64,000 nucleotides of DNA, from NCBI RefSeq assembly GCF_000143415.4, contig NW_003314295.1, positions 1,285,923 through 1,349,922 of the forward strand, read 5' to 3'. Source of the DNA: Selaginella moellendorffii. Lineage: Eukaryota; Plantae; Lycopodiophyta. Of the stretch, positions 48,496 to 64,000 are shown piece by piece (within the stretch, counting starts at the first letter, position 1; the number at the start of each line of letters is the position of its first letter). The position numbers were made by a program, and so were the translations under genes. The notes below the pieces were generated by a model, which saw nothing but the letters and a program-made list of their open reading frames with translations, ran no database searches and was not told where the DNA came from.

Positions 48496-50973
48496 TCAGA
48501 TAGATTCGACTTGGACCGTCAAATCTGTGATCCCAGCTTTGTTGAGCAGCCGTGCAACTTTGTCTCGAACTCCATTTTTGTCAGCCGTGTAAGCGTGCAA
48601 GTGCAAGCTTCCTACGATTTCGCTGTTTGTGCAGCTCCACACGTGCATCCGCTCGAATCCAGCAACACCTTCGACGTGCCGGATCCGCTCCAGCGCCTCG
48701 TGCAGCCGTTTCTCAACCGATCTGGGTGTTCTTTGCAGCAAGATCTCCGCGGAGTTAGTCAGCAACGGGACCGCGGAGACGATGATCATGGCCGAGATGA
48801 AAATGGAGCACGCTGGATCCGTGAGCATCCATCCCTTGTACTGTATCAAGACGGTAGAGATCACCACCCCGACGCTGCCCAGTGTGTCCGCTAGGACGTG
48901 CAAGAAAATCCCCCGCATGTTGTGATCAATGTGGTGGTGGTGATGGTGGTGATGATGGTCATGCTCGTTCTCGTGCTGCTCGTCCTCCTCTTTGCGATGG
49001 TCATGCTGGTGATGACCGTCGAGGTGATTGTGGACGTGGTTCGCTTGGTGGCGATGGTGGTGGTGGTGGTGGCTGCAAGTTTCTTCATGTCTGCTTTGAT
49101 CTGGAGTCTCACTGCCCGGAGAGTGTTGCTTATGCCCGTCTTCGTGGTTGTGGTCATCGTGCGAATGATGGCTAGAATGGTGCTCGTGACCCGTGTCAGT
49201 CGAGTGTTGGTGTTCCTGATGATGTTCTTGAGAAGAATCCAAATGATGATAATGGTGCTCCTCCTCCACCTCGAGTTTGATGCTCAACTCTCTGCTCAGC
49301 TTTTTCTGACTGTGTCCATGATCACATTGATGCTGCCCGTGAGAATGGGGATGATGTGCGTGGTGGTGCTCGTCGTGAAAGAAAACGAGCCCCACGAGGT
49401 TCACGAGCAATCCTCCAACAGAAACCAGCAACAGCTTCTCCGTAGAAATCTCTGGAGGGTCCAGAATTCGTTCGATGGACTCGAGCACTATAAGGGAGCC
49501 GACCAGCACCAGCAGCACGGCGTTCGCGTAGCCCGACAGAACTTCGAAACGGCCATACCCGTAGCCGAAGACTGCGTTTGGCTGAAGCTTGGAAATGTAC
49601 GAGGCATACAGCCCGATGCCCAGTGCTGCGCAGTCGAAGAGCATATGACAGGCGTCGGAGACGAGTCCCAAACTGTTGCTCATAAAACCCGAGACGAATT
49701 CCACCACCATAAAAGTCGCGTTCATGGCCAGGAAAAACGCGATCTTCCTCGACTTTCGATCAGCTGCAATGTACCGAAGCGGGCCCTTGACGAAAGACTC
49801 CGAGGCCTCCTTTTCTGCGATGGAATCCCACGTAAAAGAGGGGCTGGTCCCAGAGGATTCCCGCACAGCAAAGAAGAAGATGGCCGAGCATGCGAGGAAT
49901 CCCAGCGGAGAAATATCCAGCCCGAACACAAGCTCCAGTAGACACGCGCAGGAAAAGGTGATGAACAAGTGCCTGGAAGTCCCTGCCGGCATTTGCAGCC
50001 TGTCCTCGAAGTAAAAGTCTCCCATGATCGATCGAGCAAGTCCGAGAACCAGCATGCTACCCGCCGGCCACAAAGCGGAAGCGTGTGCCACGAAGAAACT
50101 CTCGAGCTGGAGGAGTGCCAGAGGAAGAATGAGCAGCGTAGCGCAGATGCTAGACAGGCCATGAACACGTTTCTTGGTGATCATCCGGAGGGACGTCCGG
50201 GTTGACACGAGTTGGACGACGTAGCTCAGCAAGCCGGATAAGATTGGTATCCAAACTGGCCTGTTTCCACAGCTTGATCGGGACGTCTCTGCCGCTGCCA
50301 CCTTTCCACTGCTTGGCGGCATCAAAATCCTCAGCCTGTCCTTGATCGCCAAAGGCGAGCACGATTCCACTGTCCAGCCTTGTGATAGTAGAACAAGCCC
50401 GAGAACTGTGAGCAAAACACCACGTAGTGTTTTTCTCTTTGCGTTCTTCCCGAGAACCAATCTGCCTAGCACGGACCCCGCATAGTGACCAAGAATCGCT
50501 ATCAGCGGCCCACACGATCGCACCGCTTCCAGCTTGAGGAAGACCGAGAGTGCGAGGAGCAATCCATTGGCAGCGAGAAGAATCCACTGCGACGTAGCTA
50601 TGGACGAGCGTCGCAGGGTCCGCGCTTGCTTCTCTTGGAGGAGCGCGAAGCTGATGGAGGAGGCGAGCAAGACGAGGAATGTGAAGATCACGGTGGTGGA
50701 GGGCGACGAGGACGAAGAATGCGCTGAGAGCCACGAGTGAGCGACGTAGAGAGGCAGAGTGTGGAAGACGAGTAGCAAGAACCAGGCGGGGGCTTCCGGC
50801 GGCCTAGGGCGGGGGCGAGGCGTGGGAGAAGGCGATGGAAACGACGATGGAGGGAATGGCGATGGGGAGGGCGAGAACACCGAATGGCTGAAGGACACAG
50901 ATCGAGTAGCGCGCGGAGGTACCTTGAGAGGCGCCACTGGAGGACGATCCTGTTGGCGCTGAGGCTCCTCCAT
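48496..50973 (-). CDS. MTP12: CDF-family zinc transporter MTP12 (ZnT5-like) with long His-rich loop, intronless
   Basis: Extended N-terminal TM region, SNSLGLVSDACHMLFDC, YGYGRFEVLSGYAN, His-rich loop, HNMRGIFLHVLADTLGSVGV, DLTVQVE. Confidence 0.94.
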   Translation of the reverse strand: MEEPQRQQDRPPVAPLKVPPRATRSVSFSHSVFSPSPSPFPPSSFPSPSPTPRPRPRPPEAPAWFLLLVFHTLPLYVAHSWLSAHSSSSSPSTTVIFTFLVLLASSISFALLQEKQARTLRRSSIATSQWILLAANGLLLALSVFLKLEAVRSCGPLIAILGHYAGSVLGRLVLGKNAKRKTLRGVLLTVLGLVLLSQGWTVESCSPLAIKDRLRILMPPSSGKVAAAETSRSSCGNRPVWIPILSGLLSYVVQLVSTRTSLRMITKKRVHGLSSICATLLILPLALLQLESFFVAHASALWPAGSMLVLGLARSIMGDFYFEDRLQMPAGTSRHLFITFSCACLLELVFGLDISPLGFLACSAIFFFAVRESSGTSPSFTWDSIAEKEASESFVKGPLRYIAADRKSRKIAFFLAMNATFMVVEFVSGFMSNSLGLVSDACHMLFDCAALGIGLYASYISKLQPNAVFGYGYGRFEVLSGYANAVLLVLVGSLIVLESIERILDPPEISTEKLLLVSVGGLLVNLVGLVFFHDEHHHAHHPHSHGQHQCDHGHSQKKLSRELSIKLEVEEEHHYHHLDSSQEHHQEHQHSTDTGHEHHSSHHSHDDHNHEDGHKQHSPGSETPDQSRHEETCSHHHHHHRHQANHVHNHLDGHHQHDHRKEEDEQHENEHDHHHHHHHHHIDHNMRGIFLHVLADTLGSVGVVISTVLIQYKGWMLTDPACSIFISAMIIVSAVPLLTNSAEILLQRTPRSVEKRLHEALERIRHVEGVAGFERMHVWSCTNSEIVGSLHLHAYTADKNGVRDKVARLLNKAGITDLTVQVESI

Positions 50974-56137: not shown

Positions 56138-56261
56138 ATGGTTTAAGGCATATTGATTTTACTTGAACAAAAATCTATTGCCCGGCCTTCGTTCTAAGGA
56201 AACAAACAGACAAACGTACTTAGTGTTTTTTGACCGCCCTTGTTATTCACGAGCACGTCCT

Positions 56262-56340
56262 CTACGCACACATCGATCGAGGCCCAGAAAGTTGCAGGCT
56301 ACGACATCCCAAAGAATCCAATGCTGTTTGTGAATGTCTT
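56262..56340 (+). pseudogene. Isolated cytochrome P450 fragment
   Basis: HTSIEAQKVAGYDIPKNPMLFVNV matches the post-K-helix GYDIP..T...VN segment of plant P450s; no flanking ExxR, PERF or heme motif. Confidence 0.6.
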
Positions 56341-56512
56341 GCTTCGCTCAATCACGCCCGCTCTGATTTGCCAGCTACATAGAGACGCTACAGTTATGCA
56401 ACAAAGAAAGGGGAATGTTGTTCTACGTCAATTGCGCTGCAAGAACCGAGCCGAAAATGTCGCAGATGGATATTTCTAGTACGTAATTAAAAAAAAAAAC
56501 ATCTTATATAGT

Positions 56513-56749
56513 TCACCAAGCACAAGTGATCAAAGCGCAAAAAGAGCAACATACTTTACTGAAAGGTAAACACGGGTAAAACAATGGACCGCATAGCCGG
56601 TGTATAGCTAGAATTGTACCACACAAGTAGGAAATTGAATAGATGAAGTAATATAACTTCTTACCAGTAGTAGAATTTGTGGTGGCCCTGCTGCATTCAG
56701 CTACTAGCCACAACAGGGTAGCAATTAGTAAAATAAATATTCTCCTCAT
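56513..56749 (-). CDS. Secreted 6-Cys knottin-like peptide precursor, 59 aa (exons 56749-56665, 56607-56513)
   Basis: MRRIFILLIATLLWLVAECSRATTNSTT|AIHRLCGPLFYPCLPFSKVCCSFCALITCAW*; GTAAG...CTAG 57-nt intron; CTATAAAA about 40 bp upstream of the ATG. Confidence 0.72.
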   Translation of the reverse strand: MRRIFILLIATLLWLVAECSRATTNSTTGKKLYYFIYSISYLCGTILAIHRLCGPLFYPCLPFSKVCCSFCALITCAW

Positions 56750-57214
56750 ATTTCTAGATTATATATTGGGTGGGTTGTTGCAATGTTTTATAGAATAAGA
56801 AGCTGAGTTGTAAAGAGTCTAAAGAGCTTATTTACTTTAAATATTAATTTTTTATTTTTCAAGTTCTTGACACTTTACAGATAGTCATGAATTGTGCTAT
56901 TAGTGGCAAACAAATGTTGATCATCTTTGAAAAACCAAAGACTCACGACAACATTTTAATTGCTCTTTTTTTTATAGCTGTTAATGGTTGTTTATCGTAA
57001 CAATTTAAAGTTTAACTGGAATTAATCATTTTTCATTTCTCTTGAGTCAGTTTAGCTTACTATCTTCAAAGATTATTCTAAATAAATATCAACTATATCA
57101 AGCATATTTTAAGTATATCTGTGGATATAGAGTTGTTTATATCTTCTATATTTAGAGAATAATTATATAAAAGACTTAGCACTATGTTAATTTAAAAATT
57201 AATTATTGTTTAGT

Positions 57215-58609
57215 TTAACAAACTTTACAGCTTTTCCTACACGCTCCTGGCCATTCCTGTGTGCCAACCATGTAACTTGGATTCTTGTCACACTCTCCAT
57301 ATGCAGCCCATTCTCCACACTTCTCATTCTCGTCGGCACACCCCTCTTTCTTGGGCTTCCCGAATGGAAGAACGTGAATCCACTTGGTGGCCGACCATTT
57401 CTCGCCTTCTATCACCGGACACCCGCCGTGCAAGCTCGATTCATCCGGAGTGGCATCCGGATGTAAACTATAGAACAGAAGAGCATCGCCTTTGCGTGGT
57501 TTCACTGCAAAAAGGAATGGCATGGTTCAAGGCAAAGATGCAAAGAGCAAAAGGCAATGGTTCTCACCTGCGATGCCTTTCTTAGCACAGTCGGACCAGG
57601 AGTCATCCTTAACAGTGGTGTCCTCCTAAAAAACCGAAGGAACAGACTAAAACGCTAGGACAATAAAATCTGAATTGGACAAACCTCTGACGAGGGGAAA
57701 ACTGTCTCGCCTCCCTTGACAACGTCCGAGAGGTACATGAGGACGGTGGCTATACGATGGCCACCGAGAGCTTGGTTGTATTTATCGTGAAAGTAGTCGT
57801 AGTGGGGCTCATATTTCTCGCCAAACTCGTAGCGTAGGACTTGGATGGCCTCACCGTTCTCTAGAAAAACAAACCCAAGGATAAACTTGGAAAAAAATAT
57901 GCAAAAGAAACTAGAACCTTTTGGTAAGAAAGTCCATGCGGCAATTCTTTCCTCGATCCTGTTAATCACTTCATCCTGGAGAGACAAAGGAATTTTTTTT
58001 TTTCTAAAATGACCGAGCAAGCGAGTACCTGTCCTTTCGAAAGAAACATTCCAGAGCTCGTTCGAATGTTGCTAAGGACACTCTTGCCAGACTCGTTGTC
58101 AGCCACCATAGATTTTTGGAGCTTATCCTTCGCCTATAAAACCGAAGTAGCAGATCATTCTCTTTTGTACGTTCTTAGAATAAATTTTTTTTTTATGGAG
58201 CTAGAGCAACGTACCATCTTCACGACGTGATCACACTCCGCAGCACTCATAAATCCCTTGTACAAGAACGCTCTAGCCAAAGAACAAAAAGGAAAAAAGA
58301 AAAGAAAGACCAATTCCTCCAACAAGGTCAACTTAAATCCTGGAAGAGATTCAAGAACATACCGAGGTTTCCAAGAGAGTTGGATCACTTTGGTCGGATC
58401 CACTATGGATTGATCGCTCTTGTCGGTCACAGATCTAATATTTCCATCCACGGAGTGCCTGGAAAAGAAGAAAAAGGGGGAAAATGGAGCTGGAGAAGTA
58501 GAATGTAGCATACTCACGTTTCCCCCATCCATCCTGGAAGATCGTCCACAGCTCCAAGAGCCAGAGACGCGAGCAGCAACAAAAGCGCCAAACGGAAGGC
58601 CTCCTCCAT
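57215..58609 (-). CDS. P4H: Prolyl 4-hydroxylase with C-terminal ShKT-like Cys domain
   Basis: Signal/anchor, QLSWKPRAFLYKGF.S..ECDH, RTSSGMFL, ENGEAIQVLRY..GEKYEPHYDYF, GGHRIATVLMYL..V..GGETVFP, SLHGGCPVIEGEKWSATKWIH, CADENEKC..WA..GEC.KNP.YM....GACRKSCKVC*. Confidence 0.96.
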
Positions 58610-61755: not shown

Positions 61756-64000
61756 AAACTTGTGATGCAATTGGCTTGTGCATTAAGTTAGTAGTGAGAT
61801 GCATTGAGCTCAATTCACTATCAACTGAAGTTATTTCCTTTAAACTTGTGATGCAATTGGCCTATGCATTAAGTTAGTAGTGAGATGCATTGAGCCCAAT
61901 TCATTATTAACTGAAGTTATTTCCTTTTTATCTCTCTATCCAAAGAAGGTGAGCAAGCTTAAATCTTTATTTCATTCCTCTGTGTTTAAAAGCTTTTATT
62001 GATTTTTAGAGTTTATCACTCTTCTTTAGCTAAATCACCTAAGATTAAAACAATTTGGGACAAGTTGAGCACTAGGTAATAGAACATTTTCATTTCAAAA
62101 TCTTTTATTTTCATTTTTAAATCTTAACACAATTTATCAACTTATGATGCAATTGAATAAATAATCAATAGTGAGGCATATTGAGTTTGGTTCAATATTA
62201 ATTGAAATTATCTCTTCCATCTTTCTATCTAGAATAGGTGAGCATGCTTAAATCTTTGTTTCATTTCTCTATGTTTAAAAACCTTTCTTGGTTTCTAGAG
62301 CTTATCATTTTTATTTAGCTAAATCATCCAAGAGTAAAACAATTTGGGATGAGTAGAGCACTAGATAAAATAACATTTTATTTTCAAGATCTTTTGTTTT
62401 TGTTTTTAAATCTTAACACAATTTATCAACTTATGATGCAACTGAATGATTAATCGATAAGGCATATTGAGCCTAATTCACTATTAACCAAAGTTGTCTT
62501 CACTCCATCTCTCAATCTAAAGGAAGTGAGTGGGTTTAAATTTTTATTTCATTCTTATGTGTTTAAAAGCCTTCTCTGGTTTCCAGAGTTTATCGCTCTT
62601 CTTTAGGTAAATCATCTAAGAGCACAATAATTTGAGTCAAACAAAGCACCATATAAGAGAATATTTTGCTTTCAAGATCTTTTGTTTTTGTTTTTAAATC
62701 CTAACATAATTTATCAACTTGTCATGCATCTAAATAACTAATTAATAAGGAGACGTGTTGAACCCAATTCACTATCAGCCAAAATTATCTCTTTTCCATC
62801 TCTCCATCCAAATGAGGTGAGTAGGCTTGAATCTTTACTTCATTCTTTTATGTTTCAAAGCCTTCATTAGTTTCTAAAGTTTATTGCTCTTCTTTAGCTA
62901 AATCATTTAAAAGTAGAATAATTTGGGTCAAATAGAGCATTATATAAAAGAATATTCTACTTTCAAGATCTTTTGTTTTCATTTTAAAATCCTAACACAA
63001 TTTATCAATTTGTGATAGAATTAAACAATAAATCAATACTGAGGTGCATTGAGCCTGGTTCACTATTAACCAAAATTTTCTCCTCTCCATCTCTTTTTGC
63101 AAAGGAGGTGAGTAAGCTTAAATCTTTACTTCATTCCTCTATGTTTAAAAGCCTTCACTAATTTCCAAAATTTATTGTTCTTCTTTAGCTAAATCAATGA
63201 AGAGTAAAACAATTTGGGATAAGCAAAGCACTAGGTAATAAAACATTTTGCCTTAAAGATATTTTATTTTTATTTTAAAATCTTAACACAATTTATTAAC
63301 TTGTGATGCAGCTAAATGACTAATCAATAGTGATGTGCACTGAGCTCAGTTCACTATCAATCAAAGTTGTTTCTTCTTCATCTCTCCATCCAAAATAGGT
63401 GAGAGGGATTAAATCTTTGTTTTATTCCTCTATGTTTAAAAACCTTTGTTGGTTTTTAGAGTTTATTATTTTTCTTTACCTAAATCATCCAAGAGCACAA
63501 CAATTTGGGACGAACAAGGCACCAGATAAGAGCATATTTTTTTTAAAAAATCATTTGTTTTCATTTTTAAATCCTAACATAATTTATCAACTTGTGATGC
63601 AATTGAACAATTAATCAATAGTGAGGCGCATTAAGCCTAATTCATTATCAACCAAAGTTGTTTCTTCTCCATCTCTCAATTTAGAGGAGGTGAACAAGTT
63701 TAAATCTTTGCTTCATTCTTTCGTGCTTAAAAGTTTTTGTTGGTTTTTAGAGCTTATTGCTCTTCTTTAGTTAAATCATCCAAAAGTAGAATAATTTAGG
63801 ACGAACAAGGCACTAGGTAAGAGCACATTTATTTTTCAAGATCATTTATTTTTGTTTTTAAATTCTAACACAATTTATCAACTTGTGATGCAATTGAACA
63901 ACTAATCAATAGTGAGGCACACTCAACTTAGTTCACTATCAACCAAAGTCGTTTCCTTTCTATCTTTCTATCCAAAGGAGGTGAGTAGGCTTAAATTTTT
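61756..64000. repeat. Tandem array of a ~291-bp AT-rich unit (>=7 copies, continues beyond the window), preceded by an ~85-bp sub-duplication
   Basis: Marker aatttat(c/t)aa recurs at 62131, 62420, 62708, 62999, 63290, 63581 and 63872 (spacing 289, 288, 291, 291, 291, 291). Confidence 0.95.

Follow-up and report, generated by a model that had tools for sequence, protein, structure and literature searches.

The window, the whole 64,000-nucleotide stretch of Selaginella moellendorffii DNA analysed here, contains a small candidate unit on scaffold GL377599.1 (assembly GCA_000143415.2), and the second haplotype is represented by scaffold GL377591.1. The candidate is an uninterrupted open reading frame of 78 codons (78 aa) on the minus strand, 56749..56513, and is located in a 1.08-kb spacer between a prolyl 4-hydroxylase (P4H) gene and a PPR gene, the candidate and both neighbouring genes being on the same strand. 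It lies downstream of P4H, with 466 nt between the P4H stop codon and the candidate ATG, and the PPR gene follows 376 nt further downstream. No gene call is annotated in the P4H-PPR spacer in either haplotype. The features of the locus are as follows.

48496-50973, minus strand: zinc transporter 5-like (ZnT5) cation-efflux gene, single-exon, 825 aa, with a very long His-rich loop
56137-54041, minus strand: PPR gene, intronless, 698 aa, neighbour of the candidate
56480..56512, minus strand: 3' flank, AT-rich (GC 0.15) and containing a T11 run, up to the start of 'P450-like' DNA of normal GC
56513..56607, minus strand: putative exon 2, opening with ..IHR, followed by a 27-residue six-Cys tail and a TGA stop
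56522..56593, minus strand: six-cysteine core C-x6-C-x6-CC-x2-C-x4-C, loops of 6, 6, 0, 2 and 4
56664-56608, minus strand: putative phase-1 intron of 57 nt, donor CTG/GTAAGA, acceptor TTCTAG/C (GT..AG)
56665..56749, minus strand: putative exon 1, with the ATG, encoding MRR, 14 hydrophobic residues and ECSRA, then TTNSTT
56793-56786, minus strand: TATA-like CTATAAAA, which precedes the ATG by 43 nt and is the same in both haplotypes
57215-58532, minus strand: P4H gene with 2OG-FeII oxygenase Pfam domains

The last exon of the P4H gene ends in a six-Cys domain of the ShK type, the nearest genuine Cys-rich module, with a spacing unrelated to that of the candidate; the annotated P4H products of the two haplotypes are 329 and 310 aa long. 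The candidate is unlikely to be part of the P4H 3'UTR, because it begins 466 nt away and the median 3'UTR of S. moellendorffii is 121 nt (PMC3729371). A protein search with the PPR neighbour returned only paralogues, with identity of at most 41%. The 90% cluster of the ZnT5 protein consists of two alleles and an older 819-aa model. Another strongly AT-rich stretch (GC 0.29) was found at the end of the window, 62001-64000. A repeated or terminal-inverted-repeat element was also considered as the source of the candidate and was rejected: no second copy was found in the window or the loci compared, no terminal repeats were detected, and the matches were limited to AT-rich low complexity.

An earlier note on this DNA had described the candidate as lying next to a P450 relic. 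The stretch concerned, 56240-56479 on the plus strand, had no match in Pfam or PDB at E<=10, and its resemblance to a P450 is at eye level only (AGYDIPK..VNV). This P450-like stretch ends exactly at the AT-rich DNA and is 98% identical between the haplotypes. The possibility that the candidate is simply the antisense of a P450 exon was discarded, as no P450 signal was detected in any plus-strand frame or in the 'relic' ORF.

The anatomy outlined in the earlier note was reproduced position by position: a TATA-like motif, a hydrophobic signal-like start, a 57-nt phase-1 intron candidate, the HR dipeptide and the six-Cys spacing were all found where it had placed them. By a simple rule the N-terminus is signal-like, with 12 uncharged residues of mean Kyte-Doolittle value >=2.2 within 27 residues of the Met, and small residues are available at -3/-1 of a putative cleavage site (S-R-A/T or A-E-C/S). 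The TTNSTT stretch that follows in exon 1 contains an N-x-T sequon. Exon 2 has 92 nt of coding sequence, comprising 90 nt of whole codons and 2 nt of a split codon, and two more residues separate its last Cys from the stop codon.

The intron candidate is a multiple of three, in frame and devoid of stops, and the ORF list shows one long frame because this 57-nt interval can be read through. Its length is close to the species median of 59 nt (PMC3729371). Read without splicing, the 78-aa product carries seven Cys after the signal-like region, and removal of the interval eliminates the odd seventh Cys. When translated, the 'intron' resembles the exons in being hydrophobic and containing Cys.

If the TATA-like CTATAAAA is used, the 5' leader would be only some 5-15 nt long; the median 5' leader in S. 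moellendorffii is 54 nt (PMC3729371). Such TATA-like strings are frequent in DNA of 25% GC, such as the upstream flank of the candidate. The position of the motif, with the very short leader it entails, counts against a real gene.

Base composition changes stepwise along the unit. The GC content was 0.41 and 0.43 in the two exons, 0.30 in the intron candidate, 0.25 over 465 nt of upstream DNA and 0.15 over the 33 nt past the stop, in agreement with the AT-rich surroundings that had been described earlier; these steps from exon to intron to flank are consistent with a gene. At third codon positions the candidate has a GC content (GC3) of 0.39-0.40, as compared with 0.45-0.50 in the pieces of P4H; the PPR and ZnT5 genes have 0.63-0.66, and every 58-codon segment of either reaches at least 0.43. 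The coding strand of the candidate contains 38-41% T, which raises the frequency of Cys, Phe, Leu, Ser and Tyr codons. This T-rich composition alone predicts 1.6 Cys per 30 codons, and at least six Cys in 30 open codons were obtained in 0.44% of local shuffles.

The two haplotypes (GL377599.1 and GL377591.1) were aligned over the locus. Both preserve the ORF with its start, its splice sites, all six Cys and a stop codon. Exon 1 differs between the alleles at two positions, both non-synonymous (R3S and F5Y), with the signal-like character kept, and the intron candidate carries two changes. Exon 2 has no substitution in its 92 coding nt, which is unremarkable because only about 1.8 were expected; the stop codon, TGA in the window, is TAA in the second haplotype. 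Over the whole unit the divergence was 5/237 (2.1%) vs 2.0% in 342 nt of non-coding DNA toward the PPR gene. The comparison of two haplotypes thus documents integrity but no measurable constraint, and integrity is weak evidence at 2% divergence. The other haplotype also carries a 21-nt insertion at the border of the AT-rich 3' flank. Beyond about -70 on the upstream side, divergence between the haplotypes rises sharply, to 9-29% with several indels, and the conserved block begins just before the TATA-like motif and continues through ordinary DNA. Within the spacer itself, the AT-rich segment 56820-57214, from the P4H stop to about -70, is hypervariable, with 29% mismatches and six indels. A block of about 230 nt in this AT-rich spacer is present solely in the other haplotype, and the DNA on either side of the hypervariable segment differs by 0-2%.

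Relatives and recorded products were searched for at several levels. Word-index searches of 5.8 billion protein clusters used two queries, the 78-aa read-through and a 40-aa segment spanning exon 2, that together cover products of 22-136 aa and hence spliced and partial products; no related protein was detected. A phmmer search against 1.84 billion representatives returned two matches, both of which were translated tandem repeats matching residues 13-48 seven times each, and they were dismissed as spurious. Exact look-up of the two allelic read-through products found neither on record, and the ESM Atlas search gave no usable match. Paralogues or orthologues keeping the six Cys, whose absence the earlier note had named as telling against its reading, were found neither in the protein databases, nor by tblastn in 108 kb of local DNA, nor with an exon-2 32-mer in JGI metagenome contigs. 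How much this silence says about expression is limited: the exact product of the PPR neighbour is present in the gene-position index yet missing from the clustered protein collection, and the ZnT5 cluster has members of the NCBI type only, so that absence from the protein collection is weak evidence on expression.

Profile and structure searches gave a similar picture. No curated knottin, conotoxin or spider-toxin profile matched in Pfam or PDB, and phmmer against PDB sequences returned no knottin, only insignificant RING-finger matches (E>=0.46). The sole Pfam match was to Agouti (PF05039; E 0.0013, 19.2 bits, under the gathering cutoff of 27), over profile positions 2-25 of 41. This sub-threshold match is pattern-driven and does not denote membership, since the first five Cys spacings are identical in the two. 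Exon 2 alone, modelled with AlphaFold2 from no alignment, gave a low-confidence prediction (mean pLDDT 63, pTM 0.29) with one helix at residues 17-29 and not knotted, a model too weak to bear on a knot in either direction.

The frequency at which such a unit would arise by chance was estimated from composition-matched shuffles in 500-nt blocks. The 64-kb window contains a single occurrence of a loose form of the Cys pattern, vs 0.03-0.05 in each shuffled window. Across 119 Mb of shuffled DNA, 88 loose ICK-like patterns were counted, corresponding to about 156 per 212-Mb assembly, and none of the 88 was preceded within its ORF by a signal-like Met-start. With four clustered Cys as a commoner proxy, 0.18% of the chance clusters were preceded by such a start within their ORF and 0.07% additionally ended near a stop. 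The resulting expectation is about 0.1-0.3 ORFs with both signal and knot pattern per genome, the intron not being counted. A GTAAG donor followed 45-90 nt downstream by an in-frame YAG acceptor was present in 2.6% of ORF shuffles, and a genuine intron is expected to leave the frame open and unshifted in only some 9% of cases (one third x 0.27), so the two factors largely cancel. The shuffle figures are optimistic, because the strand is T-rich, real Cys clusters are about twice as frequent as shuffled ones (64 in the real window vs 28 per shuffled window), and thousands of windows and several frameworks were screened. A realistic chance expectation is of the order of 0.3-1.5 per genome, which is not negligible for a single case.

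The reading we place first, by a narrow margin and with a probability of about 0.45, is that the candidate is an orphan, lineage-restricted two-exon gene for a secreted six-Cys peptide. Its gene-like anatomy is intact in both haplotypes and moderately improbable as a coincidence; on this reading the unit would be transcribed and the 57-nt phase-1 intron spliced out. Exon 1 would then supply a cleavable secretory signal and a short Thr-rich stretch, and exon 2 a strongly hydrophobic tail some 27-37 residues long, with possible processing after HR. The six Cys of this tail are expected to pair into three disulfides in the ER, and the product would be a compact, disulfide-stapled peptide, secreted or vacuolar, with a predicted role that is most plausibly defensive, through binding to a membrane or a target. 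Should the orphan gene be real, we put a knotted fold at even odds or slightly better.

The strongest competitor is a chance ORF in T-rich intergenic DNA, in which the signal-like start, the Cys spacing, the pseudo-intron and the TATA-like motif are coincidental and no translated mRNA would be made, and we consider this almost as probable. It accords with the lack of any homologue, paralogue, annotation or recorded product in the databases and local DNA searched, with the T-driven excess of Cys, Phe, Leu, Ser and Tyr codons, and with a 78-aa read-through that is uniformly hydrophobic and Cys-containing, the 'intron' included. A GC3 under that of all neighbouring genes and an allelic divergence equal to that of neutral DNA point the same way, and the candidate was picked from thousands of windows and several Cys frameworks, so that an expectation near one per genome is possible. 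The shuffles themselves speak against coincidence, with 0.1-0.3 cases per genome and a further factor of 0.026 for the pseudo-intron, as do the gene-like GC steps, an intron length at the species mode and, weakly at 2% divergence, the intactness of both haplotypes.

Between a selected gene and a coincidence lies a young proto-gene or a decaying singleton, coding-like and now or formerly transcribed but with no functional selected peptide, having arisen de novo from AT-rich spacer DNA or being what is left of a vanished peptide family. The orphan status, the atypical codon usage, the lack of visible constraint between haplotypes and the position on the margin of a hypervariable AT-rich block beside degenerate DNA would all suit this origin, but a six-Cys framework ending no more than two residues from the stop shows more order than a random proto-gene usually does, and we regard it as improbable. 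Least probable of all, in our view, is a real gene that remains unspliced and yields the seven-Cys 78-aa product. The frame is indeed open through the 57 nt in both haplotypes, but the odd cysteine count, the intron-like GC of 0.30 with canonical GT..AG borders and species-typical length, and the absence of either allelic 78-aa product from the records argue against it.

A relative-less singleton, if real, would be informative on the origin of disulfide-rich mini-proteins, and stable hydrophobic knotted peptides are of interest to peptide engineers. If the candidate is a chance ORF it serves as a calibration case, with coincidences of this kind in T-rich spacers expected about once per genome or few genomes; since a signal, toxin-like Cys and an intron can coincide by chance at that rate, such calls need transcript or family evidence.

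In the comparison with known systems, membership of a knottin family is not established, the resemblance being confined to the Cys spacing: the six Cys occur in the knottin order, and neither a profile match nor the plant core pattern was found. The likeness to ICK toxins, namely O-superfamily conotoxins and spider toxins, comprises the Cys order C-C-CC-C-C and a short core of about 27 aa at the C-terminus of a putative signal-pro-mature precursor. First loops of 6 and 6 residues and a last loop of 4 residues are of the toxin ICK type, and delta/muO-type conotoxins are likewise strongly hydrophobic. The candidate differs from these toxins in having no sequence or profile similarity to them, in the 2-residue loop between the CC pair and Cys V, and in its plant host. 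Agouti and AgRP C-terminal domains share the first five Cys spacings, C-x6-C-x6-CC-x2-C, with the candidate, but they have ten Cys and form a vertebrate family. With no homology to animal ICK toxins, the likeness to them would be at most convergence.

Among plant systems, the potato carboxypeptidase inhibitor, the squash trypsin inhibitors and pea albumin 1b are the nearest points of comparison (PMC11253845). The candidate resembles such plant knottins in the size range of 26-37 aa, the six Cys, the putative secretory precursor and the presumed defence role, but it does not fit their core pattern, C-X3-6-C-X5-C-X3-5-C-X1-2-C-X5-6-C, which has no adjacent CC (2024 review, PMC11253845). Characterised plant knottins are usually neutral or cationic, rather than as hydrophobic as the candidate. 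Cys-rich peptides, one cyclotide among them, were predicted for Selaginellaceae in a transcriptome survey that gives counts only (PMC7168108). Cystine-knot-type defence peptides have been characterised only in angiosperm families (PMC11253845), and a real gene at this locus would extend them to lycophytes. In its most specific form, which we hold to be rather unlikely, the candidate would be a lycophyte hydrophobic three-disulfide peptide that converged on the ICK spacing of the conotoxin and Agouti type as a recent singleton orphan at the edge of a hypervariable spacer; it would then be the first peptide of knottin type from outside the seed plants, and also a clean instance of the de novo birth of a disulfide-rich mini-protein.
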